Source: Mytilus trossulus (taxonomy: Eukaryota). Taken from it: DNA of 64,000 nt. Under the pieces are notes generated by a model, which was not told the DNA's origin, did not search any database, and saw only the letters and a list, made by a program, of their open reading frames with translations. Below are positions 11,740 through 63,463 of this stretch, in pieces. The number at the start of each line of letters is the position of its first letter. Position 1 is the first letter of the stretch. Location: positions 62,062,001-62,126,000 of the forward strand of contig NC_086377.1 of assembly GCF_036588685.1 (NCBI RefSeq), written 5' to 3'. The position numbers and the translations under genes are program-made.

Positions 11740-11848
11740 TCATAGTTGTGTTACATCGTTCACTTCCATATAAATGTGGCTGTCTCCAGAATCTGAGGTA
11801 TAGTAAATATGACTGTCAATCATTGCTGTGGGCGTCTCATAATCAGGT
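11740..11848 (-). CDS. Receptor A terminal exon: cytoplasmic tail PDYETPTAMIDSHIYYTSDSGDSHIYMEVNDVTQL*
   Basis: Acceptor tttttaacag; phase 2 matches the TM exon; ends QL-TGA like the last exon of paralog B. Confidence 0.75.
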
Positions 11849-12745
11849 CTGTTAAAAAGCAAGGAAATTGCTATTTTTATTTAATGCGTTTAATAGAATT
11901 ATTAACAACCAAGTAGAGTTCATAATTAGAAAATGAAATTACTCGACATGTATTTATAAAATATTTCCTTACTCTGTTTCTAAGAACCCGTCAAATCTTT
12001 TACATACAACCAAAGCCGTTGTATGACGACATAGGTTAATAATTTGAAGGAGATTTTAATTCAATGGAGACATCATTTTCCACTCTGAAAGGTAGCTTAT
12101 GTTTTCAAAACAACATTGCTTACACTGTCAATGTAATAGTGTTTATAAGCATCGAAAATGTGTGTGTCAAATCAGTATACTGTACATTGCTAAATTATGA
12201 GCTAGGAGTAAGATCCTCTCAGAGCCTTTTCTTGTAAATTTAATCAGTTTGTGCCCTAGCTCATGTTTTATTATTTTTCGTTCCTTTTTTTTTTTGTCCT
12301 TATTATCTGTAATATATCCTTAAATATTACAAGGTTAGATGAAATAAACAAACTCCGTCATATGCTCTTGGGGTTTTTCTGTGGTATTCTACAGAACTTA
12401 AGTATCTTGAAATCACCCCTAGTTTTTGGTGGGGTTCGTGTTGTTTATTCTTTAGTTTTCTATGTTGTGTCATGTGTACTTTTGCTTGTCTGTTTGTCTG
12501 TTTGTCTTTTTCATTTTAAGACATGCAATTGTCAGTTTGTTTTAGATTCATGAGTTTGACTGTCCCTTTGGTATCTTTTGTCCCTCTTTTAGTAAGTTTT
12601 AGACAACAGCCTCAATTTGAGCACTGCCGAAATACTAGTAAACAAAACCTCATTGTTTTAACAGATCATGTACATGTCTGATTAATATTTTCACAAAATG
12701 TAGACAGATTTGGCAATTAATCGCGGTTTATGAATTGTAACTTAC

Positions 12746-12866
12746 CGTTTTCTCTTATGTCTTAGACACACTATTATTATGCAAAGAATAACAACCAGTA
12801 CCACCACTACACTACACACAGATGCTACAATAGGAACAGTATTATCTGCACGTTCTACCTGGCTAC
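12746..12866 (-). CDS. Receptor A transmembrane exon (GSQVERADNTVPIVASVCSVVVVLVVILCIIIVCLRHKRKR)
   Basis: 121 nt, phase 1 to 2, ag/gtaag boundaries, hydrophobic helix plus basic stop-transfer; same length and phases as the TM exons of B and C. Confidence 0.88.
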
Positions 12867-12947
12867 CTTCAAGTAATAGAAATCAAATTGCATTTGTATT
12901 AATTTTGACAGGTGGTTATGATATGCTCAGCAAATGTATAAACATGT

Positions 12948-13080
12948 GCTTTATCAATGCTGCTACTTTGTTTGTTTGTTTTACTGATTTTTTATTGCTT
13001 TATCAATGCTGCTACTTTGTTTGTTTGTTTTACTGATTTTTTATTGCTTTATCAATGCTGCTACTTTGTTTGTTTGGTTT
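12948..13080. repeat. 49-bp tandem repeat, ~3 copies
   Basis: gctttatcaatgctgctactttgtttgtttg starts at 12948, 12997 and 13046. Confidence 0.9.
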
Positions 13081-13770
13081 TTTTTTATTTTGTATCATGT
13101 GTTGATAATTAGATAAAATTTGAAAGTAGTTGCTGCTTTAAATGCACTAAAATTGTATAACCTCTTGATCAGATAAAAAAAAACAGGTCAGTTAAACCGA
13201 ATGCATGCTACATATTTGATGTGTATGATCTTTATCGCTATAACTGTCTCATTTGAAATTATATATGATTTCATATATAAAGGATTTACTTATCAATTTA
13301 AAGTTTGATTTCCTTGTTTTTGCTAAGAAATTGCCGTAGTTCGCAATAAGATTTCGGAATTTACAGTTGGTGATTAATCAGTTTTTCGATTAAATACTGC
13401 AGTTGCTAAAGTGTGGCAAAAGCACAAAAAACAGGACATCAAATAAATGTTTGATCAGACTAGATTTCGTCACGGTACAATCAGTTTATAGTCTGTATAT
13501 GCTTGATAAATCTTATATACAAATCACGAGGCCAGTCTTTGCGTACAAGGATGATACTGTGCTTCGTTCTATGTTCAGTGTTATAGACCTTTCGGAATCC
13601 CCATGCTTTGACCTAGCGAAGGAAGAAAGGAAATGGGGAATATGTCAAAGCAACAACAACCCGACCATAGAGCAGACAACAGCCGTTGGCCACCAATGGG
13701 TCTCCAATGTAGCGAGAAACTCCAGCATCCGTAGGCGTCCTTCAGCTTGTCCCTTAAATAAATATGTATA

Positions 13771-13978
13771 CTGTGGATTCATTTATTTTCGTGGGTAGCA
13801 ATTTTCGTGGATAAAGAAAAACTTGCATATTCGTGGATATTTTATTTCGTGATTTTGCTGAAGTCTGTATACAAACCTATAGCAAAATGAGTATTCGTTG
13901 AACATTTGATTTCGTGGTTTGACTGTGCCCACGAAATCCACGAAAATTGGTATCCAACGAATAATAATGAATCCACAG
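13771..13978. mobile_element. Tc1/mariner-type MITE with TA TSD, inserted in an interspersed repeat (~13625-14200)
   Basis: TA|CTGTGGATTCATT ... AATGAATCCACAG|TA; the empty site (tgtactagt) is visible in another host copy near 38295. Confidence 0.85.
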
Positions 13979-15400
13979 TACTAGTAAAGTGATAATGGAC
14001 GTCATACTAAACTCCAATTTATACACAAGAAACTAAAATTAAAAATAATAAAAGATTAAAAAGGACAAAGGCTCCTGATTTGAGACAGGCGCAAAATTGC
14101 GGCAGGGTTAAGCATGTTTAAGAGATCTCAACCCTCTCCTATACCTCTAGCCAATGTAGAAAAGTAAACGCATAACAATACGCTCATTAAAATTCAATGC
14201 GAAAAGAAAACATGAAGTTATACTTTAATTCACAATTTTTTTTCATTAATCTTCAATCAAATGATTTCTTACTCGACACAGGCAGAGGAAGTTAGTCCAA
14301 GCAAATTGAAATAATTAATGGAAACCTATTTTCATACATATGACATAATCGTTGACTTCTTTTTGTCAAGCTGGTTGCATACTGTGTTAAAATAATTGAT
14401 AAGAATTAATCACAAAAATATTGAACTCTAAGATAGATTAAAAAGAGGAAAACAATTAAACATGATAAAAATATTAGTCTTATTACTCTAAAACTATATG
14501 TAAGTGAAACACTGTTCATTTCCGGTGTTAGTTATATACAGTAAAGATATTGTATGTATTACAAACATGTAACACGAATGTTCAAGTAGTTGTTATTTTT
14601 TTGAAGACACATGTTTGGTATATGAAATGGTAAGCTTTATATGTAAATGTAGATTCATTTTCGAAGCATTTTGATACTGTTTATAATCTGCTAAAATGTT
14701 TTGGTAAATGCATACTTGTTGACGATAATAAATGGACCGTTGTATTCTCTATGCATTAACCTTGTTTTCGTGTCATTTGTCATTAATTTTGTATTAAATT
14801 TGACAACATCACACATTACCCATCTTCGCTAGCCACGGGTTATGATCCACTCCCGTTCTCTCCACCCTTGGCAGATGAAGCCAACATTTGTGATCACAAT
14901 GTTGCGCCATCTATCCGAAGAATAAATTCCTGACAAATGGTGGCACTTGAACTCTTCAATTTGGCAGTAAAAACACGGTAGCGTCTAGATTCTACACACT
15001 TGGTAAAGCCGGAAATGAAAATATACATTAACATTCTTGCGTGTGTGCATGAAAAGTGCACAGGAACTCCTATTAGTTGATATAAAATATTCAAGTTGTC
15101 ACTAAATATAGTCATATTTTTAGGGATGTTCAGATTTGTTGCACAATAAACACGTAACAATTGTTTACAACCAACACTTTCTACATTTACACGTGATCAT
15201 GTTAAAAACACTTTTGGATTGAATGCAGCGAGTTTCGACTGCGACCAATAAAAATCCTTACATTGTGTCTCCGAAATTTTATCTCATCCCGCCACATTAC
15301 CGGGATAAAAAACATATTCTGTATTCACGCACCTCTTTCAATAATCTGCATACGCTCCGTTCTATTTTATGTTAAATAAGACGTTCGGGAAAAGCCGCAT

Positions 15401-17737
15401 CATACCACATCTTTTTATTTCTATATATTATAGAACTTAGTTCGGGAAAAGCATCTTAAAATTTTTAGCTACATGCCCAGCAAATTTCATGCAAAACAAA
15501 TAAAAAAGAATAGTGCTGTAACAGTTTCTCTTTCTTTTATCATTAATTTTTTATTATCAAAAACATTTTAAATCAAAATGGGACGGTAATTTCATATGTC
15601 GAAATAATTTGACGATGTTAGATTCTACAAACAGACCTAGATAAAAATCTCCTTTGACAAGTCTTAAATTATTTCAATCATTTTCAATTTGGAATAATTA
15701 ATTGAATAATACAGTGTAAACTGTATCGAATTCAGATAAATAACAACTTCTTGCAACAAGTAAACATTTTAAATTTTACTATCATTAATTCCAGTATAAA
15801 ATCTTTACTTTAACAGTTAGCTCCCCTTAAATGGCTCAATTGAAGAATCGGCTAAACAACACAAATATTTAGTGTTCAACTTTGTTTAAACATTTAGATA
15901 ATACCATAAATCTTTTTTTGATGGTGGTATATAACTACACTACCCTAACAATAGTGAGTAATACTACATATATGCTATATACATATGTTACTGAGGGCAT
16001 ATGCTACTACAAATATAAAGAAAATAGTTGAAGTTGTTATATATACTGGAAAGGTAAGTTTTATTATAAGTTATCAAAATCGTTAAAATGGTTATCCTAT
16101 TAAATTTTTTTTTTTCCTCGTGCGTCAGTTAACCGATATGTTTCAGTGACCTATTAGAACTTCGATTGCCCGACTGTTATTAAAAAGTATAAAACGAATT
16201 GTAACGCAGGGGAAAAAAAGAAATCCTCGTTTTATCAATTTACTTAATTTTCACGTGCCGATTGTTAATCAATATTACGCTCCAATAAAAAAATGGCGAA
16301 CAACACTCACTGAATGAATTATCATTTGTTGATTATACGTCTTAAATAGATATGTAAAACAAGCTTCGTACTTTGACCTATACTGGTTTACTTTTACAAA
16401 GTGTGACTACGATTGAGAGTTGTCTCATTGGCACTCATACCACATCTTTTTATTTCTATATATTATAGAACTTAGTTCGGGAAAAGCATCTTAAAATTTT
16501 TAGCTACATGCCCAGCAAATTTCATGCAAAACAAATAAAAAAGAATAGTGCTGTAACAGTTTCTCTTTCTTTTATCATTATTTTTTTATTATCAAAAACA
16601 TTTTAAATCAAAATGGGACGGTAATTTCATATGTCGAAATAATTTGACGATGTTAGAGTCTACAAACAGACCTAGATAAAAATCTCCTTTGACAAGTCTT
16701 AAATTATTTCAATCATTTTCAATTTGGAATAATTAATTGAATAATACAGTGTAAACTGTATCGAATTCAGATAAATAACAACTTCTTACTACAAGTAAAC
16801 ATTTTAAATTTCACTATCATTAATTCCAGTATAAAATCTTTACTTTAACAGTTAGCTCCCCTTAAATGGCTAAATTGAAGAATCGGCTAAACAACACAAA
16901 TTTGTAGTGTTCAACTTTGTTTAAACATTTAGATGATACCATAAATCTTTTTTTTTTCTTTATTCTAACAGTCTTCCGCATAAATTTGCAGATTTAGGCA
17001 AAGAACTTTTTATATAAATAGGGCCGTTAGTTTTCTCGTTTGTATTGTTTTACATTGTCATTTTGTGACCTTTCATAGCTGACTATGCGGTATGGGCTTT
17101 GTTCATTGATGAAGGCCGTACAGTGAGATATATTTTTTAATGTCTGTGTCATTTTGGTATCTTGTGGGCAATTGTCTCATTGGCAATCATACCACATCTT
17201 CTTTTTTTTATATAGACCGATTGTGTACTGTAGTTGTACAATAAAACATGGTTGTATTTAGCTACACTACCCTAACAATAGTTAGCAATACTACATATAT
17301 GCGATATACATATGTTAGTGAGGGCATATGCTACTTCAAATATATAGAAAATAGTTGAAGTTGTTATATATACTTGAAAAGTTAAGTTTTATTATAAGTT
17401 ATCAAAATCGTTAAAATGATTATCCTATTAAATAATTTTTTTTTTCTCGTGCGCTAGTTAACCGATATGTTACAGTGACCTATTAGAACTTCGACTGCCC
17501 GACTGTTATTAAAAAGTATAAAACGAATTGTAACGCAGGGGAAAAAAAGAAATCCTCGTTTTATCAATTTACTTAATTTTCACGTGCCGATTGTTAATCA
17601 ATATGACGCTCCAGTAAAACAAGCTTCGTACTTTGATCTTTACTGGTTTACTTTTACAAATTGTGAATACGATTGACAGTTGTCTCATTGGCACTCATAC
17701 CACATCTTTTTATTTCTATATATTATAGAACTTAGTT
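15401..17737. repeat. Local tandem duplication of ~1.0-1.3 kb units
   Basis: Units start at 15401, 16436 and 17696 (partial) with cataccacatctttttatttctatatattatagaacttagtt; near-identical over hundreds of bp. Confidence 0.9.
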
Positions 17738-17908
17738 ACGTATATATGCATGAAATGGTTCATTAGTTTTCTTTACCTAATAATAAAAAAGCTCGTTTCA
17801 TATGACTTATAACATCTAAATTTACGAATTTAATGGATATAATTGTTGGCAAAATACACTTAGTGTCTGTGTAGAGATTAATTTTGTTAGTTGGTGTTAA
17901 TGCCTAAC

Positions 17909-19242
17909 CTTGATAATCACTTCCAGCACAAACGTAAAAACAAATTCCGGTCATCAATCACAAACACTACCAGATTATGATACTGGGCAGGCGTACTTAC
18001 ATTTGTGTCCAAACCAACCAGGCAAGCACCCGGATTTACAGAACCCTGTGTTCTGATCACAAATAGTGTTTACACAATTTGAACTACAGTGTTCAGTGCA
18101 TGAAAATCCATGAAGGCCATTTTCACATTCGTATGAACAATTGTTTGCAGAATTAATACACTTTTTATTTTTACACCCGGGATAGCAGCTTTGAGTACAG
18201 GAATTTCCAAAGTATCCATCATCGCATCCAAACAAACAATTTCCATTTCCAGGGTAGCAATTTCCTCTAGACGTTCCAGCACAATTTGTACAACTATTTT
18301 CACAGTATTCGCCATATCTATTAACAACACATTGCTGTGAACATTTACCTGAATCTATATCGCATTCGTTGTTGAAACAAGTTTGTGAACATTTATTTGT
18401 GCATGATTGACCATACCACCCATTTGCACAGCCGCCATTACAGATTCCAGTTAATTTATTACAAACTACATTTCCAACTGTTGTGGACTTCGAGCAATGA
18501 CTACTACACGGACTTTGACAAATTTGCCCATAATACCCAGGTTGACATGTAGAACAAGTTCCAAATAATCTTTCACAATCTATGCAAGTGTTTACACACG
18601 GTGTTTTGCATTGAGTTCCATAAAAACCGGACGTGCAGTTATATGTGCATTCACCACTATTTCTATCACACAAATTGCCATGACAATTTTCACTACATCG
18701 TAAATTACACGTAGCACCATACCACCCCGTTACACAGTTACCTGAACAGCGTCCAGTGAGACGATCGCAGACGGAATTAATGCAATGAATTTCATTGTTA
18801 CATGGTATGTCACAGTATGTCCCATACCATCCATCTTTACAATTGTTAAGGCAATGTCCGTCTATACCGTTACAAAGTATCTGTCCAGAGGAAGACAGTC
18901 CACAGTTTGTATTACAATTGCTTTGGCAATTCAGTCCACATTTACCAGGAGCACAGCCTCCACAAGTTCAAGTTGTTTGGTTGCATAAGGTACAGGAAGA
19001 ACAGGAATTAACACAAAGCTGTCCAAATTTTCCAGGTGCACATCCATCAGAACATAATCCGGTTGTCTGATTGCATCGAGATAACTTGCAGTTATTACTG
19101 CAAATGTTTGAACAAGTATCCCCATAATAACCCTCTTTACAACTACTGCATTTCCCCGTTTGCTTATCACAAGAACTACTTAAGCAACCCATGCTACAAG
19201 TCGTATTACAATTGTTTCCATAGAAACCATCTATACACTTAC
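17909..19242 (-). pseudogene. Disabled distal half of the receptor A ectodomain exon (homologous to 54105-55439 of C)
   Basis: In-frame GGA>TGA at 18970-18968, TGC>TAA at 17977-17975, and a 1-nt deletion shortly after; the old donor CAAG|gttagg remains at 17909/17908. Confidence 0.85.
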
Positions 19243-20979
19243 CTATACATATAGCAGTCGTTTGATCACATCCTGAATTATCACATCCGGTACAAATTGT
19301 CTCACACGAATCACCAAAGTAACCAGCTTTGCATCCTCCAATACATCTACCGGATAATCGATCACATGTTGTACCTTTACAGTTACTGCTGCACGATAGC
19401 TCGCATCTAGTACCGAATTTCATGTTTGGACAATTTCCACTGCACGTTCCATCGTCCTTATTACACTGATTTGTTAAACATGACGACGGACATGACCTAC
19501 TGCAATGACTACCATGATATCCGGCAACACATTCTAACGTACATGCCCCGCTGACTTTCAGGCAGGTTCTGGGTGAGCAGTTCGCTGAACAATCTAAATC
19601 ACAGTAATCTCCATATTTGCCAGAGAGGCAATTTCCCGAACATGCGCCAGTAGTTGGGTTACAAGTATTACTGTCACAGTTCGACCCACAAGGGAGTTGA
19701 CAAAATTCCCCATAGAACCCTTGTTTGCACCCAGATGTGCACTTGCTATCTACTTGACTACATTTTTTATTTAAGCAGTTGGAGTTACAGGGTTGTAAGC
19801 AATCGTTACCATGGTATCCATCTACACAACCGGTGTCACACAAGCCAGTATTACGATTACATGTAGTTAGGCAATTAAGACATTGTAAGTCACACTGCTG
19901 GCCGTAACGTTTGCTTTTACAGCCACTACTACATATGCCATTGCTATCACACTCACCTTGGTTACAGTTAGCGGTACAATTACCTTTACATGTGTTACCA
20001 TACCAACCCGTTTTACATCCATCCGTACATGTTCCTGATGTTTTATCGCAAGAATTTAAAGTTGCACAATTATCGCTACATCTAATACATTGACCGGAGT
20101 CTAGATACCAACCAGTTTGACAGCACTCACAAACGCTCGGTTGATTTGCAACACAAGTTTCGCAATTTGGCAATGAGCAGGTAAAAGTATCGCAACGCAA
20201 TCCACTCCATCCAGCAGAACAACCAAACCGACAATTTCCAGTGTTAGGAAAGCACTTTGCTATGTTGGTGTTATTTGTTTTACAACCTCTACTACATGGT
20301 TTGCAGTAACCATTGACTCCATCATAATAATATTTCGGTTGGCATTCGGTACAGACTGTTATACCAACTGATATCAATGGTTGACATTTCGTACATAAAG
20401 TATTATTTGTCACTACCGAACAAGTTTTGTCACAACTCGGACCATAAAATCCATCTATACACCCATTTAAACATTTCCGATTGCTTTGATCGCATGTTTG
20501 TAGTCCACCATTACAATTCACGCAATAAGATGGAAAACAACTAGCTGTTTGCTGATCACATCCATATAGGCAAGAAGTTGAACACGTTGAACTACAGTCA
20601 CTTCCGTAATATCCCTTTGTACAACCTGACGTACATTGACTAGAGATTCTGTCACATTCAAAGTTAATGCATCTTATCGAACAAGACTTGTCACAATAGT
20701 TTCCCCATAGTGTTTTAGGACAACTAGTACAATATCCTAGCTGTCTGTCACATCCACATGCTAATCCAGACAGGACACATTGGTCACTGAGTGAACAGTT
20801 CTGGTTACATTCCATGTTACAGACGTCACCGAAATAACTCTTTGCGCATCCATAACATTTGCCATGCAATTGTTCACATCCACATTGACCTCCATTACTG
20901 GAGCATTCGTTTCCATAATAACACGTGGTAAAACAGTTGTACTGACAACTTCCGCCCCATACACCAGGTACACAGGTAG
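19243..20979 (-). CDS. Receptor A ectodomain exon (1737 nt, phase 1-1): multiple laminin-type EGF-like repeats, MEGF10/SCARF-like
   Basis: Open frame with repeated C..G(F/Y/W)xG..C...C...C units; acceptor gattgcag before 20979; donor AG|GTAAGT at 19243/19242. Confidence 0.82.
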
Positions 20980-21347
20980 CTGCAATCATATATAAATAAG
21001 CCTTGTTGATAACAAACCTTGGTGAAAGATGGATACAGAGCAAACAAAACCATTATAACTCATAGACGGTTATAGTTATATGTATTAACCGTTTAACCTC
21101 CATTTCAAAGATTACAAGTTTCTAATATTAAAGAAAATGTATTGGTATCTCTAAATATAATCTTTTCTAAAGAGGATTTTTCATAATATAAGTATATGGA
21201 CTCTCTAATGGTTAATAAGTACGTGTAAACCGCTAGTTGTTTTCTATATCTTATAAGAAATCATATCTTGAAAGTACAATATGTTGGAGGCGATGGCTAA
21301 TAATTTGTTGTCATATAATTGTATAGTACATATATCATATCTGTTAA

Positions 21348-24811: not shown

Positions 24812-24884
24812 CATGTATCCCTATATCAAACAGTGTAATATGTAAAACGACAATTAATATTTGTGGTATCACATAACCATCCAT
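24812..24884 (-). CDS. Receptor A signal-peptide exon (MDGYVIPQILIVVLHITLFDIGIH-A)
   Basis: acaATG start, hydrophobic core, G|gtatgt phase-1 donor compatible with the 20979 acceptor. Confidence 0.7.
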
Positions 24885-26599: not shown

Positions 26600-26678
26600 T
26601 CATAATTGGCTTGTTTCTGCTAGCTCTGAGTATCTTTTTGTTGGAGTGTCTTTTGAATTACTGCTGCTTGTGTCTGAT
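26600..26678 (-). CDS. Receptor B terminal exon: SDTSSSNSKDTPTKRYSELAETSQL*
   Basis: Acceptor tatttttaacag, phase 2, stop TGA; candidate AATAAA on the minus strand near 26309-26304. Confidence 0.75.
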
Positions 26679-27763: not shown

Positions 27764-27884
27764 TTTTTTCTTCTCAAACACCAATATAATATTACGACAA
27801 GAAATATTATGACCATGACGCCACCAGCAGTAGCACCTGCAATCATGATGGTGTTGTTATCGTTGTTTTCGTTCATAGATGTAC
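27764..27884 (-). CDS. Receptor B transmembrane exon (GTSMNENNDNNTIMIAGATAGGVMVIIFLVVILYWCLRRKK)
   Basis: 121 nt, tttgtag/gtaagg boundaries, phase 1 to 2, hydrophobic helix plus RRKK. Confidence 0.9.
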
Positions 27885-29077: not shown

Positions 29078-30814
29078 CTTCACATTTTCCAGTATTCTGA
29101 CTACATCCCAAAGTACCACATCCGGTACACGTGCTCTGGCAAAATGTGTCATGGTAACCAATTTTGCATCCATCAACACAGGCTCCAGTCTTTTGATGAC
29201 ATAACGTGCTTTTACAGTTACTACTACATGTTTGATCACATTTGTCGCCGAATTTGCCCTCAAAGCAATCAGTAGTACAATCTCCCTTATCCTTTTCGCA
29301 CTTGTCAGTCGGACATGAATCAGGACAAGAAACATTACAATGACTTCCAAAATACCCATCCTTGCATACTGAAGCGCATGCGCCATTTTCTTTCACGCAT
29401 AAGGGCTCTAAACACTGAGATGGACATTTTATATTGCAATTTTTGCCGTAATTTCCAGATGAACAGATCCCTATGCACGTTCCCGTCTCTACATCACATT
29501 TATTTTCGCTGCAGTTTGATCCACAGGAAAGATGACAAAATTTCCCATAATACCCCTCTTCACATCCGCCTGAGCATTGCCCATTGCTTTGATCACACTG
29601 ATTTCCAAAGCAGGTATCATTGCATAATTGTTGACAATCGTCACCGTGATAAGTATCTATGCAACCAGACTCACAAAACCCAGTCTGCTGGTCGCATGCA
29701 ATCTTGCAATTGTTACACATTGTATCGCAATTTTTTCCATAACGTTTTCCAACGCATCCCTCAGTACAGTTGCCATTTACATCACACTTTCTATTCAAAC
29801 AGTTCGAAGCACATGCATGTAAACATTTAAGACCATACCAACCGTTCTTGCATCCATTCGTACAAGTTCCAGAAGCTGCGTCACATTCATTTGCAACTGC
29901 GCAGTTGGTATTGCATTCTACGCAGTTTCCAGATTCAACAAACCATCCATTTTCGCAACGAGCACATACTTGTGATTGATCATAAACACAAGAGTCACAA
30001 TTCGCAACGGTACAATCGCATTTCGATCCGATCCAATTCGATAAGCATCCAAACCGACAAATTCCTGTTTTTGGAAAGCACGTGGATAAAGACGTCACGT
30101 TTGAACTGCAACCTGTGCTACATACCTTACATTTCTTGCTGGACATGTCGTAAAAATATCCTGACTGACATTCTTCACATACGGTTAGAGTTACAATAGG
30201 TGTACTGATGTGTCTACAATTGGTACATTTTGACACCCCCGTTTCTTCTGCGCATGTCTTATCACACGTTTCCCCACTAAATCCCGTAATACATCCGGAT
30301 TTACATTTCTGTGTGACGTTATCACATCCTGACATTCCCTTGATACAGTTGATACAATATGGCGGGAAACATTCCGCCGTCTGCCGATCGCATCCACTTT
30401 GACAAGACAAAGAACATACCGAAGAACAGTCGCTCCCATAAAACCCCTTTAAACAACCGAAAGTACAAATACCATCAATCCAGCTACATTCGGAATTGAT
30501 GCAATTATCGGAACACTTATTTTCACAGTAACTACCCCATGTTGATTTTGGACACCTGTTGCAGTTACCTTGTTCTCTGTCACAGCCGCAAGCAAATTCA
30601 AAGCCGTCCTGTACACATTGTTCATTAAGAGAACAAATATCATCGCATTTTATATCACATGAAACACCATAAAAGTTGGTAGAGCATTCATAGCACGTGC
30701 CATTAGTTTGCATGCATCCACATTGACCGCCATCGGAGCAGGTGTTTCCATGGTAACAAGAGGAGGAACAGTTGTACTGGCAGTTACCTCCCCATTTTCC
30801 TAGATTGCATTGAG
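29078..30814 (-). CDS. Receptor B ectodomain exon (1737 nt, phase 1-1), multi-EGF MEGF10/SCARF-like; full protein ~663 aa
   Basis: Open Cys-rich frame colinear with A and C; acceptor gttttaag; donor GAAG|gtattt with an in-frame stop three codons into the intron. Confidence 0.88.
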
Positions 30815-31641: not shown

Positions 31642-31696
31642 CTTGAGCAGAGGTTATCCACACCAAGACCATGAAGTTCAACAATACGCAAAGCAT
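31642..31696 (-). CDS. Receptor B signal-peptide exon (MLCVLLNFMVLVWITSAQ-A)
   Basis: Acceptor tttatag before 31707, ATG at 31696, hydrophobic core, AG|gtacgt phase-1 donor. Confidence 0.82.
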
Positions 31697-35612: not shown

Positions 35613-35679
35613 ATGGAGAAATTATTGATTTGTGTTTTAAGTTTGTTTGGAATTATTTTATTAATTGGATTTTCGAAAG
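35613..35679 (+). CDS. Receptor C signal-peptide exon (MEKLLICVLSLFGIILLIGFSK-A)
   Basis: acaATGG context, hydrophobic core, AAG|gtaagt phase-1 donor compatible with the 52368 acceptor; implies a ~16.7-kb intron. Confidence 0.75.
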
Positions 35680-36845: not shown

Positions 36846-39279
36846 CAAATGACGTAGAAATTAACATGCAACTATAGGACTCCGTACAGCCGTCAACAAT
36901 GAGCAGAACATCATTCCGCATCGCAAGCTAATAAAGTATGGACCCCAAATGATAAATATACTAGTAATTAAACATTTTAAACGCGAAAACTAACGACCTG
37001 ATTTAATAATCTTAATCTAATTCAAGTTTTCTATCCCGTTGACTAACCTAAGGAATCAAATCTTGAATAAATGAAGCCTTCGCAATTTTACTTTAAAAAA
37101 AATAACTGGGTGTATACTAAATGTACTTAGGTGGAAACAAATCTGGTCTGGACAGGTTCACTCTGTGTATAAATATGGTTTACCACACAGGACATATAAT
37201 TTACCTTTTTCATCATGTCACTAAAATACTTACTCAAATTTAAATAATCAACATCTTGTCTATAAAGCAGAGGTGGGTTTTAAAAAATCTGACCTTATGA
37301 GGTGTTGAACTTTAAACGGAAGGACATGCGAAAGCTTAAAGTGGTAATGCAATTAATTCTTGACGGAAGGCCTTTTCCTGAATTATGTTAAGGAAATCCA
37401 AAGGTCCATTTATTGCAAAAAATACAATTAAAAATAAGGTGTACTGTATATTTCTCTCGTCATTTCTATGCCTGTATGGTGTTAGTTTTTGTGACGATTC
37501 TTTACCCTGTAGTGTCAACAACTATTTTCTCGTGTTCTATACGAACTGAAATTAGTGACTAGTCTTTAAACAAGACGACAAAAAGTTGCGATTTCTACAA
37601 GAAAGTCAGGACATGATTAACAATTACAAGTAAAACTTATTTTGATCCAATATCAGAACATTTTAAACTGGATACTTTACAATTAAAAAAGACGAAGACA
37701 ATAAAAAGTTTGTATTGTATGTAATTTGAATCTAATTTATAGGCTTGGAATATAACTACCCACGTTTAAATGCTATTAAAATAAGAATTTCTCCAGCACT
37801 CCCTATACTCCCGTATTAATATCCCTGAAGCCATAAAACAATAAAAATTAATCAAGCAAAATTCCTATTCCACGAAAATCGCCACCAGTTGTTGAAGTTC
37901 TTTGAGATTGTATTGCAATCTACAAAAACACGATGCTGAAATCTATAAATAAAAATCGATGACGGAAAGCAATTAAAATCCGTTCATTTACACTAAGTTA
38001 TATCCATCACTATTGTGATCCTATGTGTTAATTGCTAGGATCTCACATTAGGATTGATCCGATCAATATTTTTTAATGTCTTTTTGCATCTTTTATAACA
38101 TGTGAGAATATTTGTTCAAACTATAATCCAGGTGAAGTTCAGACATAAAATTGAGAATTGATATGTGGAATGTGTTAAAGAGACAACAACTCGACCAAAG
38201 AGCATAAATAACCCAGTGCCATTAACCGGCCATCAACACAGCGAGACAATCCCGCACCCGAAGTTGGGTCTCAGCTGACCTCTAAACAAAAATGTGTACT
38301 AGTTCAGTGATAATGTACGTCATACTTAACTCCAAAACATATCTGATTACAATTTTACTGCGAATATTTTTGGATATCAAAGAGATAACATTGTGGGCAG
38401 TCCCTAAAAACAAAAAAAATAGTAATACAAAAACAATAAGATAATGCTAAAATAAGTCATAATGCCAAGAAAAGCTGTCGTTACTCGTTTGTTTATAATA
38501 CTAGTACTTTCCGGCAACTTTCGGAAAAGTAATGTTATAATCATCATCTCCTTTATTCATATATGTATATTGAACTGAGTACTTAGTCTATGTCGAATTC
38601 TAGGGTATTTCGAGAGGAATCATTTGCATTTTAGTATTGTACTTTAAACGTCTGAAATGGGTGTGAATAACCAGTTCTAAAGACTAAACAGAAACGTCAT
38701 TAGAATGATTAAAATGATGACACATTGTTTGCATGAAGTTTCGAGGTGTGTTAATAATCCGATGCGTTTTACTAAGTTGAATAACTTGTGTCACTATGCT
38801 TTACTTATATAGAATTATGAGCTAATAAATTAGTCCTAAAGAAATAGAGGCATTTCAATTTTAAGCTGTCAAAAGGAAAATCATTACAGCAGGCTCTTTG
38901 AGGTTTTCTTTTCGTTTCTTTCTCGTTTGTTTATTCAGATTTAAGGGGACATACCCTGGCCTTATGTTCTTCTCTCAACATTTCCCTCTCTATATCAAAA
39001 TGCCGGGCACGTACCTACTAGTACCTACAAACTAAAATTGGTATTTTCAATGAAGCTCTATATCAGTCGGTACCGCTGTTGGTTGTTATCATAAGCTTAG
39101 TACACAGTAGTCGGTGCTTTGTCATGATTTATCATATGTGTTTTGTCTAAATTCACCATGTAGTAGTTAAGAAACTCTTACCAATTACCTTACAAAATGC
39201 CGACCTTAAACGATTTTGGCTATTCTAATATGTCCTTTTCTGTCACATAGCTCCGACATTTGGGTTCTGGGGGTTCCTC

Positions 39280-48937: not shown

Positions 48938-48995
48938 TAAATCACACGAGAACAAGATAAATCACACGAGAACAAGATAAATCACACGAGAACAA
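48938..48995. repeat. 20-bp tandem repeat, ~3 copies
   Basis: The unit atcacacgagaacaagataa is repeated. Confidence 0.9.
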
Positions 48996-52367: not shown

Positions 52368-55300
52368 CTGCCTGTGGTTATGGTGTATGGGGCGAAATTT
52401 GTCAGTACAACTGTTCTACCACGTGTTATTATGGAAACGAATGCTCAATTAATGGTGGCAAATGTGGATGTGAACAATTGCATGGAAACTGTTACGACTG
52501 CGCAAAGAATTATTTTGGTGACGTCTGTAATAAGGCATGTAACCAGAACTGTTCACTCAGTGACCAATGTGTCCTGTCTGGATTAGCATGTGGATGTGAT
52601 AGACAGCTAGGAAATTGTACTAGTTGTCCTAAAACACTATGGGGCAATTATTGTGACAGGTCTTGCTCGATAAGATGCATCAACATGGAATGTCATAGAA
52701 CTTCAGGCCAATGTACGTCTGGTTGTAAAAAGGGTTATTATGGAGGTGATTGTAGTTCCCAGTGTTCAACTACTTGCCTATATGGTTGTGATCAGCAAAC
52801 AGCTGTATGTTTTCCATCTTACTGCGTGAACTGTAATGGTGGACTACCAAAATGCGATCAAAGCAATCGGAAATGTTTGAATGGGTGCATAGATGGATTT
52901 TTTGGTCCCAGTTGTGACAAAACTTGTTCTGTAGTGACAAATAATACTTTATGTACGAAATGTCAACCATTGATATCAGTTGGTATAACTGTCTGTACGG
53001 AATGTCAACCGGAATATTATTATGATGGCGTTATTGGCGAATGCAAAACTTGTAGTACAGGTTGTAAAACAAATAACACCAACATAGCAAAGTGCTTTCC
53101 TAACACTGGAAACTGTCGGTTTGGTTGTTCTACGGGATGGAGTGGACTGCGCTGCGATACGTTTACCTGCTCATTGGCAAATTGCGAATCTTGTGTTGCG
53201 AATCAACCGACGGTTTGTGAGCGCTGCCAAGCCGGCTGGTATCTAAACTCCGGTCAGTGCGTTAGATGTAGCGATAATTGTGCGACCTTAAATTCTTGCG
53301 ATACAACATCAGGAAAATGCACGGGTGGATGTAAAACGGGTTGGTATGGTAACACATGTAAAGATAATTGTACCACAAACTGTAACCAAGGTGAGTGTGA
53401 TAGCAATGGCATATGTAGTAGCGGCTGTAATGACAAACGTTACGGTCAGAAATGTGACTTGCAATGTCCTAATTGCTTAACTACATGTAATCGTAATACT
53501 GGCTTATGTGATGCCGGTTGTGTGAACGGATACCATGGTAACGATTGCTTACAACCCTGTAACTCCAAATGCTTAAATAATAAATGTAGTCAAGTAGATA
53601 GCAAGTGTTCCTCAGGGTGCAAACAGGGGTTCTATGGGGAATTTTGTCAACTCCCTTGTGGGTCAAACTGTGACGGTAATAGTTGTAACCCAACAACCGG
53701 AGCATGTTCGGGAAATTGCCTCTCTGGCAAATATGGTGATTACTGTGATTTAGATTGTTCAGCAAACTGTTCACCCAGAACTTGCATAAAAGTGGGTGGT
53801 GCATGTACGTCAGATTGTGTTGCCGGATATCATGGTAGTCATTGCAGTAGGACATGTCCGTCGTCATGTTCAACAAATCAATGTAATAAAGATGATGGAA
53901 CGTGCAGTGGCAATTGTCCAAACATGAAATTCGGAACGAGATGTGAGCTATCGTGCAGCAGTAACTGTAAAGGTACATCATGTGATCAATTATCCGGTAG
54001 ATGTGTGGGAGGATGCAAAACTGGTTACTATGGTGATTCTTGTGAGAAAATTTGTACCGGATGTGATAATTCAGGATGTGATCAAACGACTGCTGTTTGT
54101 ATAGGTAAGTGTATAGATGGTTTCTATGGAAACAATTGTAATACGACTTGTAGCATGGGTTGCGTTAGTAGTTCTTGTGATAAGCAAACGGGGAAATGCA
54201 GTAGTTGTAAAGAGGGTTATTATGGGGATACTTGTTCAAACATTTGCAGTATTAACTGCAAGTTATCTCGATGTAATCAGACAACGGGAGTATGCTCGGA
54301 AGGATGCGCACCTGGAAAATTTGGACAGCTTTGTGATAATTCCTGCTCTTCCTGTACCTTATGCAATCAAACAACCGGAACTTGTGAAGGTTGTGCTCCT
54401 GGAAAATATGGACTGAATTGCCAAAGCAATTGTAATACAAATTGTGGTCTGTCTCCCTCTGGACACATAATTTGTGACGGTATTGATGGATATTGCCTAA
54501 ATAGCTGTAAAGATGGATGGTATGGAACATACTGTGACATACCTTGTAACAATGAAATTCATTGCATAAGTTCTACCTGCGATCGTCTCAATGGACGATG
54601 TTCAGGTAACTGTGTTACGGGATGGTACGGTGCTACGTGTAATTTACGATGTAGTGAAAATTGTTTTGGCAATTTGTGTGATAGGGATAGTGGTGAATGC
54701 ACATATAACTGCACGTCTGGTTTTTATGGCACTCAATGCAAAACACCTTGCGTAAACACTTGCACAGATTGTGAAAGATTATTTGGAACTTGTTCTACAT
54801 GTCAACCTGGGTATTATGGGCAAAATTGTCAAAGTCCGTGTAGTAGCCATTGCTCGAAGTCCTCAACAGTTGGAAATGTAGTTTGTAATAAATTAACTGG
54901 AATCTGTAATGGCGGTTGTGCAAATGGATGGTATGGTCAATCATGCACAAATGAGTGTTCACAGACCTGTTTCAACAGTGAATGCGACATAGATTCCGGT
55001 AAATGTTCACAGCAATGTGTTGTTGATAAATACGGCGAATATTGTGAAAATAGTTGTACCAATTGTGCTGGAACTTCGGGAGGAAATTGCAACCCTGGAA
55101 ATGGAAATTGTTTGTTTGGATGTGACAATGGATACTTTGGAAATTCCTGTACTCAAAGCTGCTATCCCGGATGTAAAAATAAAAAGTGCGTTTATTCCTC
55201 AAACAATTGTTCATATGGATGTGAAAATGGCCTATATGGATTCTCATGCACTGAATCATGTAATACAAATTGTCAAAACAATATGTGTGATCAGAAAACA

Positions 55301-55439
55301 GGGTTCTGCACATCTGGGTGCAGGCCTGGTTGGTTTGGAGAGAAATGTAAGTACGCCTGTCCAGTTTCATGCTCTGGTAGTGTTTGTGATCAGGTGACCG
55401 GAAGTTGTGTTGACGTTTGTGCCGGAAGTGATTGTCAAG
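52368..55439 (+). CDS. Receptor C ectodomain exon (3072 nt, 1024 codons, phase 1-1; alternative short form 52368-54104), roughly 25 EGF-like repeats
   Basis: Uninterrupted Cys-rich frame; acceptor aattgtag; distal donor CAAG|gtttga where the Cys pattern ends; internal AG|GTAAGT at 54104/54105. Confidence 0.9.
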
Positions 55440-57793: not shown

Positions 57794-57914
57794 GTACAAC
57801 CATTGAAGATGATACTGAAGTAGATATAGCCATTGTAATTGGTGCAACGATAGGTGGCGCTGTAGTATTGTTGATCATCATGATCATTGTATGTTGCCAC
57901 TGTCTTAGGAACAA
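57794..57914 (+). CDS. Receptor C transmembrane exon (GTTIEDDTEVDIAIVIGATIGGAVVLLIIMIIVCCHCLRNK)
   Basis: 121 nt, cctag/gtaagt boundaries, phase 1 to 2. Confidence 0.9.
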
Positions 57915-58309: not shown

Positions 58310-58515
58310 ATAAAGGCAACAGAACTATACTGCTGTTCGACATTCATAAATCAATAGAGAAAAAAAAAATCGAATTAGAAAAACTAAAACTAAGGGAAAC
58401 GCATCATATGTAAGAGAACTACGACACAACAGAAACACAACATTAAAATATAACACACAGAGAAAATAACTATAATATAACAATGGCCATTTCCCTGACT
58501 TGGTACAGGGCATAT
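58310..58515 (+). repeat. Third interspersed repeat family (aaaggcaacagtagtataccgctgttcga...)
   Basis: Second copy at ~61660-61910. Confidence 0.75.
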
Positions 58516-58799
58516 ATAAAAGTCAGTAAATGTTTTCGAAGATAAAAATTGCTTTGAATTTCACTTAAATTTACACATTATGCCGCTTGTTTTTACTTTT
58601 AAAATGTTTTACATTTCCATATCCAAATGCTTTTTATAGCGTATTGCACGGTTTTGATTTTGCTGTAGCCTGACATTGTTAATATATGTGTTAATTTTTG
58701 TTGTATAATTATCTATTTTGTATTCACATAGTATGTCCTTATTACTATTTATATCAAAGTACGCTTTTGCATTTTTCTGACATGAACCTTTGACAGAAA

Positions 58800-60575
58800 T
58801 ATTAAACGGACGGTATAAGAACAGTTAAATTACAGAGAATCAAATGATCATGTCTTGAGTTTACAAATGCAAGGACGGTATAAACTATACGTTTTGAAAA
58901 CATAAATAATATTTTATATTGAAAAGGCATATTTTGTTGCATTATTATCTTCTTCATAATCGTACCTCATTTCCATATTTTTATATCACAATAGATTTTT
59001 GCATTTGTAAGAAATGATATTTCGGTACGGATATTAAGAGGATGGTAAAAAACAGTTAAATAACAGAGGATCAAAAGTTCAACACTTAAAAAAGGCAGAC
59101 TGAAACTTTCACTGTTGGAAAACTTTCAAAATTTTTAACATTGAAAATTCACAATTTTACTTGTTTCATTGTTGGTATTTCACATGCATCTTCTTATATC
59201 AAAAGGTATTTTTGTGTTTATTCTAAAGAAAACTTTGGCACACATAAAGATGAGTAGAAAACAGTAAAATAACAGAAGATCAAAAGTTCATAAGTTTATA
59301 AGGAAGACATAGACTATCACTTTTTAGAAAAATTACAAAATATTTAACATTGAAAATGCACGTTATTATTTGTTTCATTGTTATCCTACCGCATCTTCGT
59401 ATTCAATATCGAAATATATTTTTGCATTTCTCATAATAAAGGAGATATTGATAGGACGGTATGAAACGCATAAATACCAGAATTTAATCAAATCTAAGTG
59501 TATAAGGAAGACACAAAATTTGACCTTTGGAAAATATACAAAATGTTTAACATTGATTGTCTTCCTAATCGTATCACATTTCCTTATTTTTATATCACAA
59601 TATATTATTGCATTTTTAATAAATAATACTTCCGTACAGAAATTGAACAGGACGGTATAAAACAGTTTAATTACAGAGGGTCAAAAGTTCATCAGTTTAG
59701 AAAGGCAGAGTTAAACTATCACTATTTGAAAACTTTCAAAATTTTTAACATTGAAAATTCACAATTTTACTTGTTTCATTGTTGGTATTTCACATGCATC
59801 TTCTTATATCAAAAGGTATTTTTGTATTTATTCTAAAGAAAACTTTGGCACACATAAAGATGAGTAGAAAACAGTAAAATAACAGGGATATCAAAAGTTC
59901 ATAAGTTTATAAGGAAGACATAGACTATCACTTTTTAGAAAAATTACAAAATATTTAACATTGAAAATGCACGTTATTATTTGTTTCATTGTTATCCTAC
60001 CGCATCTTCGTATTCAATATCGAAATATATTTTTGCATTTCTCATAATAAAGGAGATATTGATAGGACGGTATGAAACGCATAAATACCAGAATTTAATC
60101 AAATCTAAGTGTAAAAGGAAGACACAAAATTTGACCTTTGGAAAATATACAAAATGTTTAACATTGATTCTTCCTAATTGTATCACATTTCCTTATTTTT
60201 ATATCACAATATATTATTGCATTTTTAATAAATAATACTTCCGTACAGAAATTGAACAGGACGGTATAAAACAGTTTAATTACAGAGGGTCAAAAGTTCA
60301 TCAGTTTAGAAAGGCAGAGTTAAACTATCACTATTGGAAAAATTTCAAAATATTTAACAGAAGAATTCACGTTTTAACTAGTTTCATTGCTGTCATACCA
60401 CATCTTCTTGTTTTTATATCAAAATATCTTTTTGTGTTTATCCTAAAGAAAACTTTGGCACACATAAAGATGAGTAGAAAACAGTAAAATAACAGAAGAT
60501 CAAAAGTTCATAAGGTTATAAGGAAGACATAAACTATCACATTTGGAACAATTACAAATATTTAACATTGAACAG
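58800..60575. repeat. Intronic satellite-like array of ~200-bp monomers with a 611-bp higher-order duplication
   Basis: The motif aaaacagt.aa.taacaga.gatcaaaagttca recurs every ~200 bp; sequence at 59370 is near-identical to that at 59981 (offset 611). Confidence 0.85.
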
Positions 60576-61569
60576 GGATTAAAATATTTTGGAAAATTCA
60601 CAACCATTATAATAGTACGTACAAGTTTAATGACCATTTAAATTGCGGATAAACACAGTAAATAATTTCATCAACGCATGAAGCTGATGCAAAACGACGT
60701 ATGTGATCGGAACTAAAACTGATTGACAATCTTTATATGGCCTTTTTTAATAATTGAAGTGCTACTGGTGAGGAGTAGTAGACGTAATACGCGTATTGTA
60801 TAACATTTTGATAATCCTGGTACATGTATCTAGGATGATTATGTATTGAATTGTTTTGTTTTTTTACCTTCCAAAACTGGCGTATAAAACTATCAGCCAG
60901 GTATCCCTGGTGGTTGTTTTTTCTCTCTCGAACATACGTCATCACATTTGTTTCAAGAAAAAAACACCAAATATTAAAACATGTGACGAACAAAGTGTAA
61001 AGTAACACAAACGGTTTTCTAAACAATGATTCAAATACCCACAGCACGAATATAATTAAAAGTAGGGGATCTATTCTTTGACTCGCCTTCGTAGATCATC
61101 ACCCTGTAATTCGGTAGTTATCGTTTTAGCTGTTTATCATATTTGTTTTTTGCTTATTGATTTGTACATAAATCAGGCTCGTGTAAATTACTTATACTTG
61201 TCATTTCGTTGTCAATTATAGTTTTTAGGCGGGATTGGTCTTGCCTACTGTTGAATGATAACCTATAGTTGCAAAAACCATTTTGTCTCTGGTTGAAATT
61301 CATATTACACCTTCTTATTTTAATTGTCACTACTTAAAACATTAACCATCAATGAAAACACTTTTTTTAATATCTAATTGATGCACTAACAAGTCAATTT
61401 TTAATTAATGTTCAGTGACTCTTACTTTGCCTTTTTTTAATAAACATCGTTACCCACAAATAGTACTATCCCTAATTTGACTTCACAATTCTTAATATCG
61501 GTTTTAAAAACCTTGACGTAATGACTGTTTGTAAATGTGTCTTTTTCAAAAATATTATTTTGGTTTCAG

Positions 61570-61637
61570 GGACAGACATGATAGAAAAAACGGCAGTGAC
61601 GACGTATTAACACCTCATTCAGATGATTCTTTGGAAG
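61570..61637 (+). CDS. Receptor C juxtamembrane exon (DRHDRKNGSDDVLTPHSDDSLEG)
   Basis: tttcag acceptor, AAG|gttagt donor; phase 2 to 1 links the flanking exons in frame. Confidence 0.8.
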
Positions 61638-62456
61638 GTTAGTCATAATTTAACTGTCAAAAAAGGCAACAGTAGTATACCGCTGTTCGAAACTTATATA
61701 AATCGATTGAGAGAAGAAAAAAACCCGGATTACTAACTAAAACTGAGGGAAATGCATCAAATATAAGAGGAAAACAACGACACAATAGAAACACAACATC
61801 AGAATGTAACACACACAGAAACGAACTATAATATGACAATGGTCATTCTCCTGACTTGGTACAGGAAAATGGTGGGTTGAACCTGGTTTGGTGGCATGCC
61901 AAACTCCCGAAATAGGACAGAGAAACAGACGAACAATATCTAACAAAGGGTACCAGGTTTGAACATTTCGGTGAATATTGAAACAGAACATGATAATAGT
62001 TTCTTATATATGAAGGTTTACATTTTTATCCGATTGTTCGAAGTCACATTTACAGATTTCGAAATAAAACTTAATGCTCTTCATGGTCATGTTGCTTGAA
62101 ATGGTCTACGGGATCAACCTATATTTCATCAAATCCAATTGAAAGTATAAAAAAGGATAAACACCTTATAAATTGCACGCTTCCATTTTGTCCGCGCAAT
62201 GCCGATTATTTAGAAACAAATTATGCATTGGAATCAAAATATTACAAAAAAGGACATAGATAAATACTAGTAGCCAAAGTTAACTTATGAATTTTATCGG
62301 TAACTGTTAGTTTAAGCAAGTTATGAAGACCCATAAATGGTTCCTCGTCACAATGATAACAGATGAGATAGGAACTAATCTTCAAAGATTTGCATATCTA
62401 ATGGATTACATTATTATAGAAAAGAAAGTAGAACCAATCGAAGTTATATAAATACA

Positions 62457-62704
62457 TTACAGCTGATTTCCTAATGCTTGTAAAGTAAAAGTTTGGTTGG
62501 CTTGCTTGCTTTGTTTGTATAATTGTTTATTCAAGCTTTGTAAATAAGATTGACATTTTTAAACAATTTATATAGGCATAGTTTAACCTGAATATATTAT
62601 ATTTGAATTTAATTGGGTGTTATCCTAGTGATTTTACAATAAACAAACAAAGCAAGCAAGCCAACCAAAGTTTTGTTCTACATGCATTAGGAAATTAGCT
62701 GTAA
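62457..62704. repeat. Inverted repeat with ~70-bp arms and a ~110-bp spacer
   Basis: ttacagctgatttcctaatgc...tttggttggcttgcttgctttgtttgt versus acaaacaaagcaagcaagccaaccaaa...gcattaggaaattagctgtaa. Confidence 0.85.
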
Positions 62705-62869
62705 CGGAAGACTTCATACTTACATTTAATACGTCTGATAATGTTAAGATAATCAAAGACCGGTATGTTTGTATAGGTATGAAAGTTCGTAGCCAAAATG
62801 ACCTTAAGATCGTAGTGAAATTCATCGAAGGTCCAATTAGCTTAAGGGAGTTTTGAACCTCGGTTTCCT

Positions 62870-63049
62870 AATTCCCCGTTTCAGAATCTAATGCATTATG
62901 GATAATATTTGCTAAAGCGGACACCAAAACGTCGTGATTGATTAGAAATGTCATAAACAATGTAAATTCAACCAATAACGTGACCTTATTTTGTTTGGGT
63001 ACGAACAATGAGATTACCCATAGTCCTTTAGATTCTGTAAAGGCGAATT
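62870..63049. mobile_element. MITE with ~37-bp imperfect TIRs
   Basis: aattccccgtttcagaatctaatgcattatggataat versus attacccatagtcctttagattctgtaaaggcgaatt. Confidence 0.7.
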
Positions 63050-63119
63050 GTTTTCTTAATTTTTATTATTTTTCTAAAACAAAAGATGACATTATTTTTG
63101 TTTATGGTTTGATATAAAG

Positions 63120-63463
63120 GAATAGACAATCACCAGTTTGCCAGTTATGATGAAATCAAGAAAGACGATTGGGTGATGCGTAATACTATACGCTATGATA
63201 CGCCAAAACAAAATGGAACCCTTCACCCACGTGGTGGAGAGGCAGACGCACATACGGATTATTACGATTTCCCGCCACCACCACCTGAAAAAACTGTTGC
63301 AGACATAAATTCAATTTCCTTTACGACAGAGGGACTTCCTCCTCCGCCTTTAACTGTGCATTTCAGTGACTTTGACGGACGAGAAGGCATTCAAGTAGAG
63401 ATGCTCCCTCAATATGTGGAATACATGCTGCATAAGGACAACGCATTCGAATCTGAATACGAT
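63120..63463 (+). CDS. Receptor C cytoplasmic exon with Tyr/polyproline motifs and probable start of a receptor PTP D1 domain; gene continues beyond the window
   Basis: Phase-1 acceptor; GIDNHQFASYDEI...YDTP...YYDFPPPPP...LPPPP...IQVEMLPQYVEYMLHKDNAFESEYD|gtaagt. The I.V..L..YV....F..EY pattern resembles the helices that precede RPTP catalytic domains. Confidence 0.8.

Follow-up and report, generated by a model that had tools for sequence, protein, structure and literature searches.

A three-gene cluster of EGF-array receptors in the mussel Mytilus trossulus, in which a receptor tyrosine phosphatase and a short-tailed neighbour carry closely similar ectodomain exons

The window considered here is a 64-kb stretch of the Mytilus trossulus genome (G000:C5:62,062,001-62,126,000), free of runs of N and located within a 1.3-Gb assembly. 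It contains three neighbouring genes of one design, with genes A and B on the minus strand and gene C on the plus strand, and the best protein matches of the genes in the window are RefSeq proteins of M. edulis, M. galloprovincialis and M. californianus. The scaffold common to the three genes comprises a signal exon, a giant phase 1-1 exon encoding an array of EGF modules and a transmembrane (TM) exon of 121 nucleotides (nt). As read in the sequence, the splice sites give each giant exon AG/GT borders and phases 1-1, whereas the TM exons are all exactly 121 nt long and run from phase 1 to phase 2. A short exon encoding a methionine and a hydrophobic stretch, ending in phase 1, lies 5′ of each giant exon. 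A preliminary description of this DNA had proposed three paralogs on a single exon scaffold, and the coordinates, the phases and the 121-nt TM exons can all be read accordingly (Table 1). Genes A and C lie approximately 31 kb apart in inverted orientation, and the signal exon of gene C stands head to head with gene B at a distance of 3.9 kb. Besides these three, no further copy of the giant exon above approximately 41% identity was found in the 1.3-Gb genome, its nearest other genomic relatives being approximately 40% identical.

Table 1. Coordinates of the exons of genes A, B and C (positions in the window unless otherwise indicated)
Feature	Position	Strand	Remarks
Gene A signal exon	24812-24884	-	24 codons + 1 nt, donor GTATGT, phase 1
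Gene A giant EGF exon	17909-20979	-	3071 nt, 90.8% nt identical to that of gene C
Gene A TM exon	12746-12866	-	121 nt; membrane span without charged residue
Gene A tail exon	11740-11848	-	35 codons + stop, four Tyr, YMEV, ends TQL-COOH
Gene B signal exon, predicted	31642-31696	-	18 codons + 1 nt, donor GTACGT
Gene B EGF exon	29078-30814	-	1737 nt, phase 1-1
Gene B TM exon	27764-27884	-	121 nt
Gene B tail exon	26600-26678	-	25 codons + stop, single YSEL, ends SQL-COOH
Gene C signal-peptide exon	35613-35679	+	22 codons + 1 nt, donor GTAAGT, phase 1
Gene C giant EGF-array exon	52368-55439	+	3072 nt, phase 1-1, 184 Cys
Gene C TM exon	57794-57914	+	121 nt, phase 1 to 2; 87-89% identical to RefSeq orthologues
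Gene C small juxtamembrane exon	61570-61637	+	
Gene C Pro-rich juxtamembrane exon	63120-63463	+	ends in the N-terminal helix of the first phosphatase domain
Gene C, 16 more stretches matched by tblastn	window-equivalent 64142-85417 (G000:C5:62126142-62147417)	+	

Gene C is collinear with receptor protein tyrosine phosphatases (RPTPs) of M. edulis, M. galloprovincialis and M. californianus from its signal exon to window-equivalent position 85414. The identity to these RefSeq proteins amounts to 91% in the EGF exon and mostly to 88-100% in the cytoplasmic exons, two of which are at 79-85%. The signal exon, located 16.7 kb 5′ of the giant exon, is 83-87% identical to the N-termini of the RefSeq Mytilus RPTPs (tblastn), and the juxtamembrane exon at the end of the window is 95-97% identical to M. 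edulis and M. galloprovincialis. The giant exon itself is 91.4% identical and collinear to the M. edulis model XP_071139551 (P0081, 1793 amino acids), in which its end is joined straight to the TM exon. It also contains two internal consensus donors, after 53390 (CAAG/GTGAGT) and after 54104 (ATAG/GTAAGT), hence three ectodomain lengths are possible. In M. edulis, isoforms X14-X21 differ only by the use of two internal 5′ splice sites of the giant exon.

Examination of the next 30 kb of the contig revealed that the exons of gene C extend approximately 21 kb beyond the window and encode two tandem protein tyrosine phosphatase (PTP) domains, D1 and D2. D1 contains the motifs NKRKNRY and DFWRMVW, the WPD loop (FTSWPD), VHCSAGVGRTG and the Q loop (QTPDQY), the HC(X5)R motif lying at G000:C5:62,136.9-62,137.8 kb. 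In D2, the corresponding sequences read WSE and HCMNGATKVG, and for this reason the domain looks non-catalytic. Two D1 exons exceed the cut-off of the Pfam model PF00102 (38-50 bits versus 20.9), and PF00102 is precomputed on the orthologues as well. It had been proposed in the preliminary description that the tail of gene C leads into a probable tyrosine phosphatase, and that HCSAGxGR should be sought past base 64000; the motif and the PF00102 matches are indeed found downstream, so the objection that gene C might have no PTP domain falls. Judged by these motifs, gene C is a receptor tyrosine phosphatase with a catalytically complete-looking D1 and a degenerate D2. The linkage of its signal, ectodomain, TM and PTP parts is indicated by fitting exon phases and by RefSeq orthologue models that join the same exons, its splicing being taken from these models and not from reads of M. 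trossulus. In addition, C-type EGF sequence was found in sequencing runs guessed to be RNA, and no short-tail alternative last exon was found in the introns of gene C.

Gene C is an ordinary gene that sister-species annotations already include. It is the orthologue of molluscan EGF-array RPTPs such as XP_071139551 of M. edulis (“uncharacterized protein isoform X3”) and LOC127721484 of M. californianus (“MEGF6 isoform X1-X5”), with which it has in common the exon order, D1, D2 and the internal donors, while the EGF exon is approximately 9-10% diverged in protein. Relatives of these proteins are also present in Pinctada, Haliotis, Ostrea and Ruditapes. More generally, annotations in many molluscs combine the EGF-array design with PTP domains, and elsewhere it is annotated with tyrosine-kinase domains or short tails. 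A full-text search of the literature found no paper on EGF-array RPTPs or on paired receptors in molluscs.

Several other observations were made on gene C. The exon at 63120-63463 encodes DFPPPPPE and LPPPPL, EVH1-ligand-like proline runs located just N-terminal of the PTP domain, and it is flanked by interspersed repeats of approximately 180 bp (62870-63050 and 63490-63670). These resemble short interspersed nuclear elements and are 82-89% identical among the 40 that were scored of 3254 first-look genome candidates. The intron between the TM exon and exon 4 contains a tandem duplication at 58951-60572 (plus strand) with a period of approximately 610 bp and copies 93% identical, surrounded by older copies at 66-85% identity. 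In M. galloprovincialis, two C-type sequences, P0124 and P0006, differ by approximately 9% in the EGF exon, whereas their cytoplasmic parts match the cytoplasmic exons of the window at similarly high identity, a contrast suggesting that the allelic or copy diversity in the ectodomain is unusually deep.

Gene B has a shorter EGF exon, which is 52% identical in amino acids to the first ~580 residues of gene C and ends at the homologue of the second internal donor of gene C. No relic of the distal half was found 3′ of this donor. An open reading frame 91% identical to the exon is present on a Logan contig (P0049). The predicted signal exon of gene B is the sole candidate of the Met-hydrophobic, phase-1 type between its giant exon and the first exon of gene C.

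The tails of genes A and B are homologous, with like starts and the same last ten positions, Y-x-E-[VL]-x-[DE]-x-[TS]-Q-L-COOH. This shared end holds one YxxΦ motif (YMEV in A, YSEL in B) and a class I PDZ-type terminus, and the tail of gene A differs from that of gene B by three more tyrosines. Hence the cluster contains two kinds of tail and not three. The preliminary description had rightly read a multi-Tyr tail in A and a single YSEL in B, but its picture of three different signalling tails is not borne out, given the common start and C-terminal pattern of A and B. When the two tails were read for known motifs, neither contained NPxY, an immunoreceptor tyrosine-based inhibitory motif (ITIM) or a full immunoreceptor tyrosine-based activation motif (ITAM), and both membrane spans are without a charged residue. 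The tail of gene A reads YxxS...YxxV and not Yxx[LI]x6-12Yxx[LI], and it is possible to regard it as a degenerate ITAM; many of the other molluscan MEGF-like short tails carry YxEL...YxEL pairs. A genome search with the tail of gene A returned only its own exon, and the tail was not found in RefSeq proteins of any Mytilus.

The giant exons of genes A and C are 90.8% identical in nucleotides over the full 3072 nt and 88.7% identical in amino acids over 1007 codons, and they align without gaps except for one base missing in A. The divergence corresponds to 0.28 substitutions per synonymous site (dS) and 0.055 per non-synonymous site (dN), with a ratio omega of 0.19 that is even along the exon, and 184 of the 184 cysteines are kept. 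The similarity of the two ectodomains, previously estimated by eye at ~86% over 115 residues, thus holds for the exon as a whole. The inverted homology reaches approximately 20 nt 5′ of the acceptor and 56 nt 3′ of the donor. The 56 nt past the donor are 77% identical, as expected of neutral DNA at a dS of 0.28, and beyond the ends of the tract the 2 kb flanking each side show no detectable homology. The TM exons of A and C are 57% identical in nucleotides (range given for the TM exons, 54-63%), and their signal and tail exons are unrelated, in agreement with the dissimilarity of these small exons noted before. After a whole-gene duplication of such an age, the introns should still be recognisable and the TM exons alike, so only the exon was copied.

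In gene A, the full-length EGF frame is broken. Relative to the frame of gene C, the giant exon contains a TGA for GGA (18970-18968), a TAA for TGC (17977-17975) and a third stop, TGA for CAG (17956-17954), with a 1-nt deletion beside it. The assembly is matched exactly over 17708-18206 by contigs of the best DNA run, which possibly derives from the source sample and would then not be independent. All lesions lie distal to the two internal donors; gene A retains both of these (after 19957 and after 19243) in perfect form, as does gene C. The proximal 578 codons are open with every cysteine kept, and all splice sites, as well as the signal, TM and tail frames, are intact. Translation of a 60-nt junction between the donor at 19243 and the TM exon of gene A confirmed that the two are in frame. 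Likewise, in the A-type protein of M. californianus (P0135), the EGF part stops exactly at the second donor and is followed by the TM exon. Relative-rate tests with the C sequence of M. californianus as outgroup counted 61 changes unique to A and 31 unique to C over the whole exon (p 0.002). In the proximal 578 residues the counts were 34 versus 22 (p 0.11), and in the distal 430 residues 27 versus 9 (p 0.003), while M. edulis C and the window C were equal throughout. The simplest reading is that gene A is, or recently was, expressed in a short-ectodomain form, and that the distal half of its exon, carried over when the exon was copied, is decaying as an intron.

Genes with signal peptides of the A type are also present in M. 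edulis (P0050, CAG2233002), M. galloprovincialis (P0125) and M. californianus (P0135, XP_052084204), these three peptides being 57-63% identical to that of gene A. CAG2233002 is three accession numbers away from an RPTP on the same M. edulis contig, and XP_052084204 is a RefSeq model of 683 amino acids named “CED-1-like”. The TM exons of gene A and P0135 are 48% identical and both start with GSQV. Since P0135 has both a signal peptide and a TM exon of the A kind, the A-type gene predates the split of M. californianus. The tail annotated for P0135 is unrelated to that of gene A, is free of tyrosine and resembles repeat sequence in the window. Stop-interrupted sequences resembling this C-terminal tail are located at 38102-38263 and 13551-13731 (both on the plus strand), and the annotated tail may be an exonised repeat.

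The tree of the EGF exon shows a different history. The A sequence of M. californianus pairs with the C sequence of the same species and not by gene type, and the window A falls into an unresolved group with the window C and sequences of the edulis group. The approximately unbiased (AU) test rejects an A-type clade (p 0.0002, log-likelihood difference 44.6) and a C-type clade (p 0.008); with reduced, RefSeq-grade rows, it also rejects the pairing of the window A with the M. californianus A (p 0.018, log-likelihood difference 30.6). As the EGF exons are not grouped by gene type although the A-type gene is older, we interpret the pattern as one or more exon-scale exchanges between A and C, by gene conversion, after the split of M. 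californianus. Of the per-exon trees advised in the preliminary description, the one for the EGF exon, built from proteins, thus gives no grouping by gene type and places an exchange after that split.

The relationship of the cluster to known receptors can be considered at the level of the scaffold and at the level of the gene pair. SCARF1/SREC-I, MEGF10, Draper and CED-1 are engulfment and scavenger receptors, and the last three have an N-terminal EMI domain and NPxY/YxxL engulfment motifs. In the sources, relatives go by the names MEGF6/10/11 or CED-1-like, and the only solved structure matched by sequence to the giant EGF exon is that of SCARF1 (8hna, E 9.6e-6). Like SCARF1/SREC-I, MEGF10, Draper and CED-1, genes A and B encode single-pass proteins with a long Cys-rich EGF array and a short Tyr-bearing tail. 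In contrast to MEGF10, Draper and CED-1, they have neither an EMI domain nor NPxY, and their tails of only 25-36 residues have a class I PDZ-type [TS]-Q-L end. In the window, no Pfam match to the EMI domain was found, and the Pfam EGF models all stayed under the cut-off.

The gene pair A/C resembles the paired receptors of the KIR, SIRP and Siglec type, in that the two genes are closely linked and encode a near-identical binding region on unrelated TM and tail parts. Furthermore, their similarity is confined to ectodomain-coding DNA and was renewed after speciation, and one partner shows a tendency to decay. In paired receptors, ectodomain similarity kept by concerted evolution or gene conversion is a typical genetic hallmark, and the activating partner is often lost (PMC13358205). 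However, the scaffold of A and C is an EGF array of the SREC/MEGF type and not an immunoglobulin superfamily (IgSF) or C-type lectin fold, C has its own tandem PTP domains in place of ITIMs, and the short partner A is without a charged TM residue, a canonical ITAM or a conserved tail. On this comparison, the analogy with paired receptors holds in form only.

Taken together, these data are best explained by a cluster of three single-pass mussel receptors resembling SREC and MEGF10, each on the same scaffold of four exon parts and with gene C as the conserved member, with the following structural and evolutionary account, which we consider probable, although with considerable reservation. Gene A would be an old, separate short-tail gene, whose distinct signal and TM exons are present in four Mytilus species. 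Once M. californianus had split off, gene conversion or exon replacement would have overwritten the giant exon of gene A with that of gene C, over a tract made up of the exon and at most ~20 nt 5′ and ~56 nt 3′ of it. Gene A most likely uses the second internal donor, a splice choice that we infer, as does its annotated orthologue in M. californianus. The distal half of the exon would then be spliced out and hence decay, consistent with a number of unique changes three times that of gene C. If expressed, gene A would produce a membrane-anchored protein that copies the proximal ~580 residues of the RPTP ectodomain and lacks the phosphatase. Gene B would be an older short form, at 52% identity, with the same type of tail as A. 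By extension, A and C may bind a shared ligand or compete with one another.

Several points weigh against this account. The other species were compared by protein sequences only, and the A-type models P0050 and P0125 stem from older automated annotations and are incomplete. The branches of the trees have moderate support (80-93%), and a first tree had been inspected before the groups were named. Diversity of the C exon is also high in M. galloprovincialis, two of whose sequences share just 91% identity, and such diversity within a species makes conversion harder to tell from deep allelic lineages. For four independent lesions, the chance of all falling in the distal 43% of the exon would be 0.04, but three of the four lie within 25 nt. 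Finally, a search of sequencing runs with the giant exon of gene A found DNA runs that contain it (0.76, 0.53 and 0.42), whereas runs guessed to be RNA scored ~0.1 and none of them contains the exon. Contigs of four runs were compared with positions 15200-21150 of the window. Two RNA-guessed runs gave short pieces on gene A and none on the unique intron bins, and these pieces carry the letter of gene C at 29 of the 37 listed differences. They are hence C-type transcripts of related mussels that cross-map, and are uninformative on gene A. Separately, the intron of gene A contains very high-copy repeats (16195-16592, 16991-17388 and 17588-17786) with many spurious joints, at which the summed contig depth reaches 10^4-10^6 in all four runs, the RNA-guessed ones included.

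The preliminary description had interpreted the locus as a working system of paired receptors, in which A (and B) would recruit kinases or adaptors and C would dephosphorylate, on the same ligand and in the same cells, with the ectodomains kept matched by selection. Linked genes with an 89% identical ectodomain on different tails are what such a system would look like. The exon-limited copying and the trees that do not follow gene type are listed as typical of paired receptors, and the frequent loss of the activating partner would fit the lesions of A (PMC13358205). The purifying selection on the shared exon (omega 0.19) and the tyrosine spacing in the tail of A, which is like a degenerate ITAM and recalls the molluscan MEGF-like tails with YxEL...YxEL, point in the same direction. 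However, the tail of A has no Yxx[LI] pair, ITIM or NPxY, its TM segment is uncharged, and the tail is not conserved, that of the M. californianus A-type protein being Tyr-free and repeat-like. In addition, A and B carry tails of the same kind, the long form of A is broken and no RNA for A was found in the runs searched. The phosphatase, the ectodomain exon common to a PTP gene and a short-tail gene and the exon-limited exchange are supported, whereas the three different tails and the proposed functions are not, and we regard the interpretation as a whole as unlikely. A related and equally speculative proposal is that of an EGF-based paired module whose inhibitory arm is itself an RPTP. In such a module, recurrent conversion would keep the ectodomain of the short-tail A-type protein matched to that of C, and the two proteins would read the same ligand or each other with different outputs, the one as a decoy or competitor and the other by dephosphorylation.

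Conversely, gene A could simply be dying, and its similarity to gene C would then have arisen neutrally from a single non-allelic conversion between inverted paralogues lying close together, without any functional link. Three stops and a frameshift, an excess of unique changes over gene C (61 versus 31, p 0.002), the lack of an RNA run that contains the exon, and a tail that is unique in the genome and matched by no RefSeq Mytilus protein would all be expected of such a gene. On the other hand, the lesions are all distal to the internal donors, and the 578 proximal codons are open, retain all cysteines and do not differ significantly from gene C in unique changes. Moreover, no splice site is damaged, the frames of the signal, TM and tail exons are intact, and A-type genes persist in four species, with one RefSeq model of 683 amino acids. 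We regard simple death of the gene as improbable. An ordinary whole-gene duplication, after which the introns and small exons diverged and the EGF exon was conserved, would account for the common scaffold and phases of A and C. A dS of 0.28 nevertheless predicts approximately 75-80% identity in the introns and the TM exon, whereas the TM exons are 57% identical and the homology ends ~20 and ~56 nt outside the exon. Furthermore, the signal and TM exons of the A type predate the split of M. californianus, while the EGF exon of A coalesces with that of C later. This origin was rejected on account of the intron and TM divergence, the ends of the tract and the tree placement, and we consider it very improbable.

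Other observations concern the remainder of the window and the genome. At 3211-4329 (minus strand), an intact open frame of 372 amino acids belongs to the GIMAP/AIG1 GTPase family (PF04548, E 3.4e-49) and ends in a long tail that looks like a coiled coil; the GIMAP/AIG1 family is much expanded in bivalves. At 9152-9898 (plus strand), an open frame of 248 amino acids has a Gly-zipper-like hydrophobic C-terminal part and no Pfam match, and ESM Atlas features point to proteins of the LRAT/NlpC-P60 type (score 0.91, 189 shared features). Elsewhere in the genome, an uninterrupted, intronless frame of 940 amino acids (G000:C2:23162569-23164125, plus strand) encodes two complete PTP domains (PF00102, E 5.8e-73 and 4e-47). 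It may be a retrocopy of a tandem-PTP gene, all other PTP matches in the genome being split by exon. Dense clusters of PTP-domain exons are present on contig C1 of the assembly, for example at 52.4-52.7, 59.7-60.4, 61.4 and 95.2-95.8 Mb, and at least 150 exon-level PF00102 matches genome-wide suggest a large RPTP expansion in M. trossulus.

Most known paired receptors belong to the IgSF and C-type lectin families of vertebrates, and they are read as footprints of host-pathogen conflict. At this locus, the genetic signature of paired receptors is found in a bivalve, on an EGF-array scaffold, with an RPTP as the partner in place of an ITIM receptor. If the EGF-based paired module were real, it would represent an invertebrate, non-Ig origin of paired-receptor logic. 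Even with gene A silent, the locus provides a clean case of exon-scale conversion combined with the decay of half an exon behind an internal donor. If gene A is expressed, it would provide a simple, testable case of how a symmetric phase 1-1 giant exon allows a single binding module to be re-wired and to stay in step between genes.

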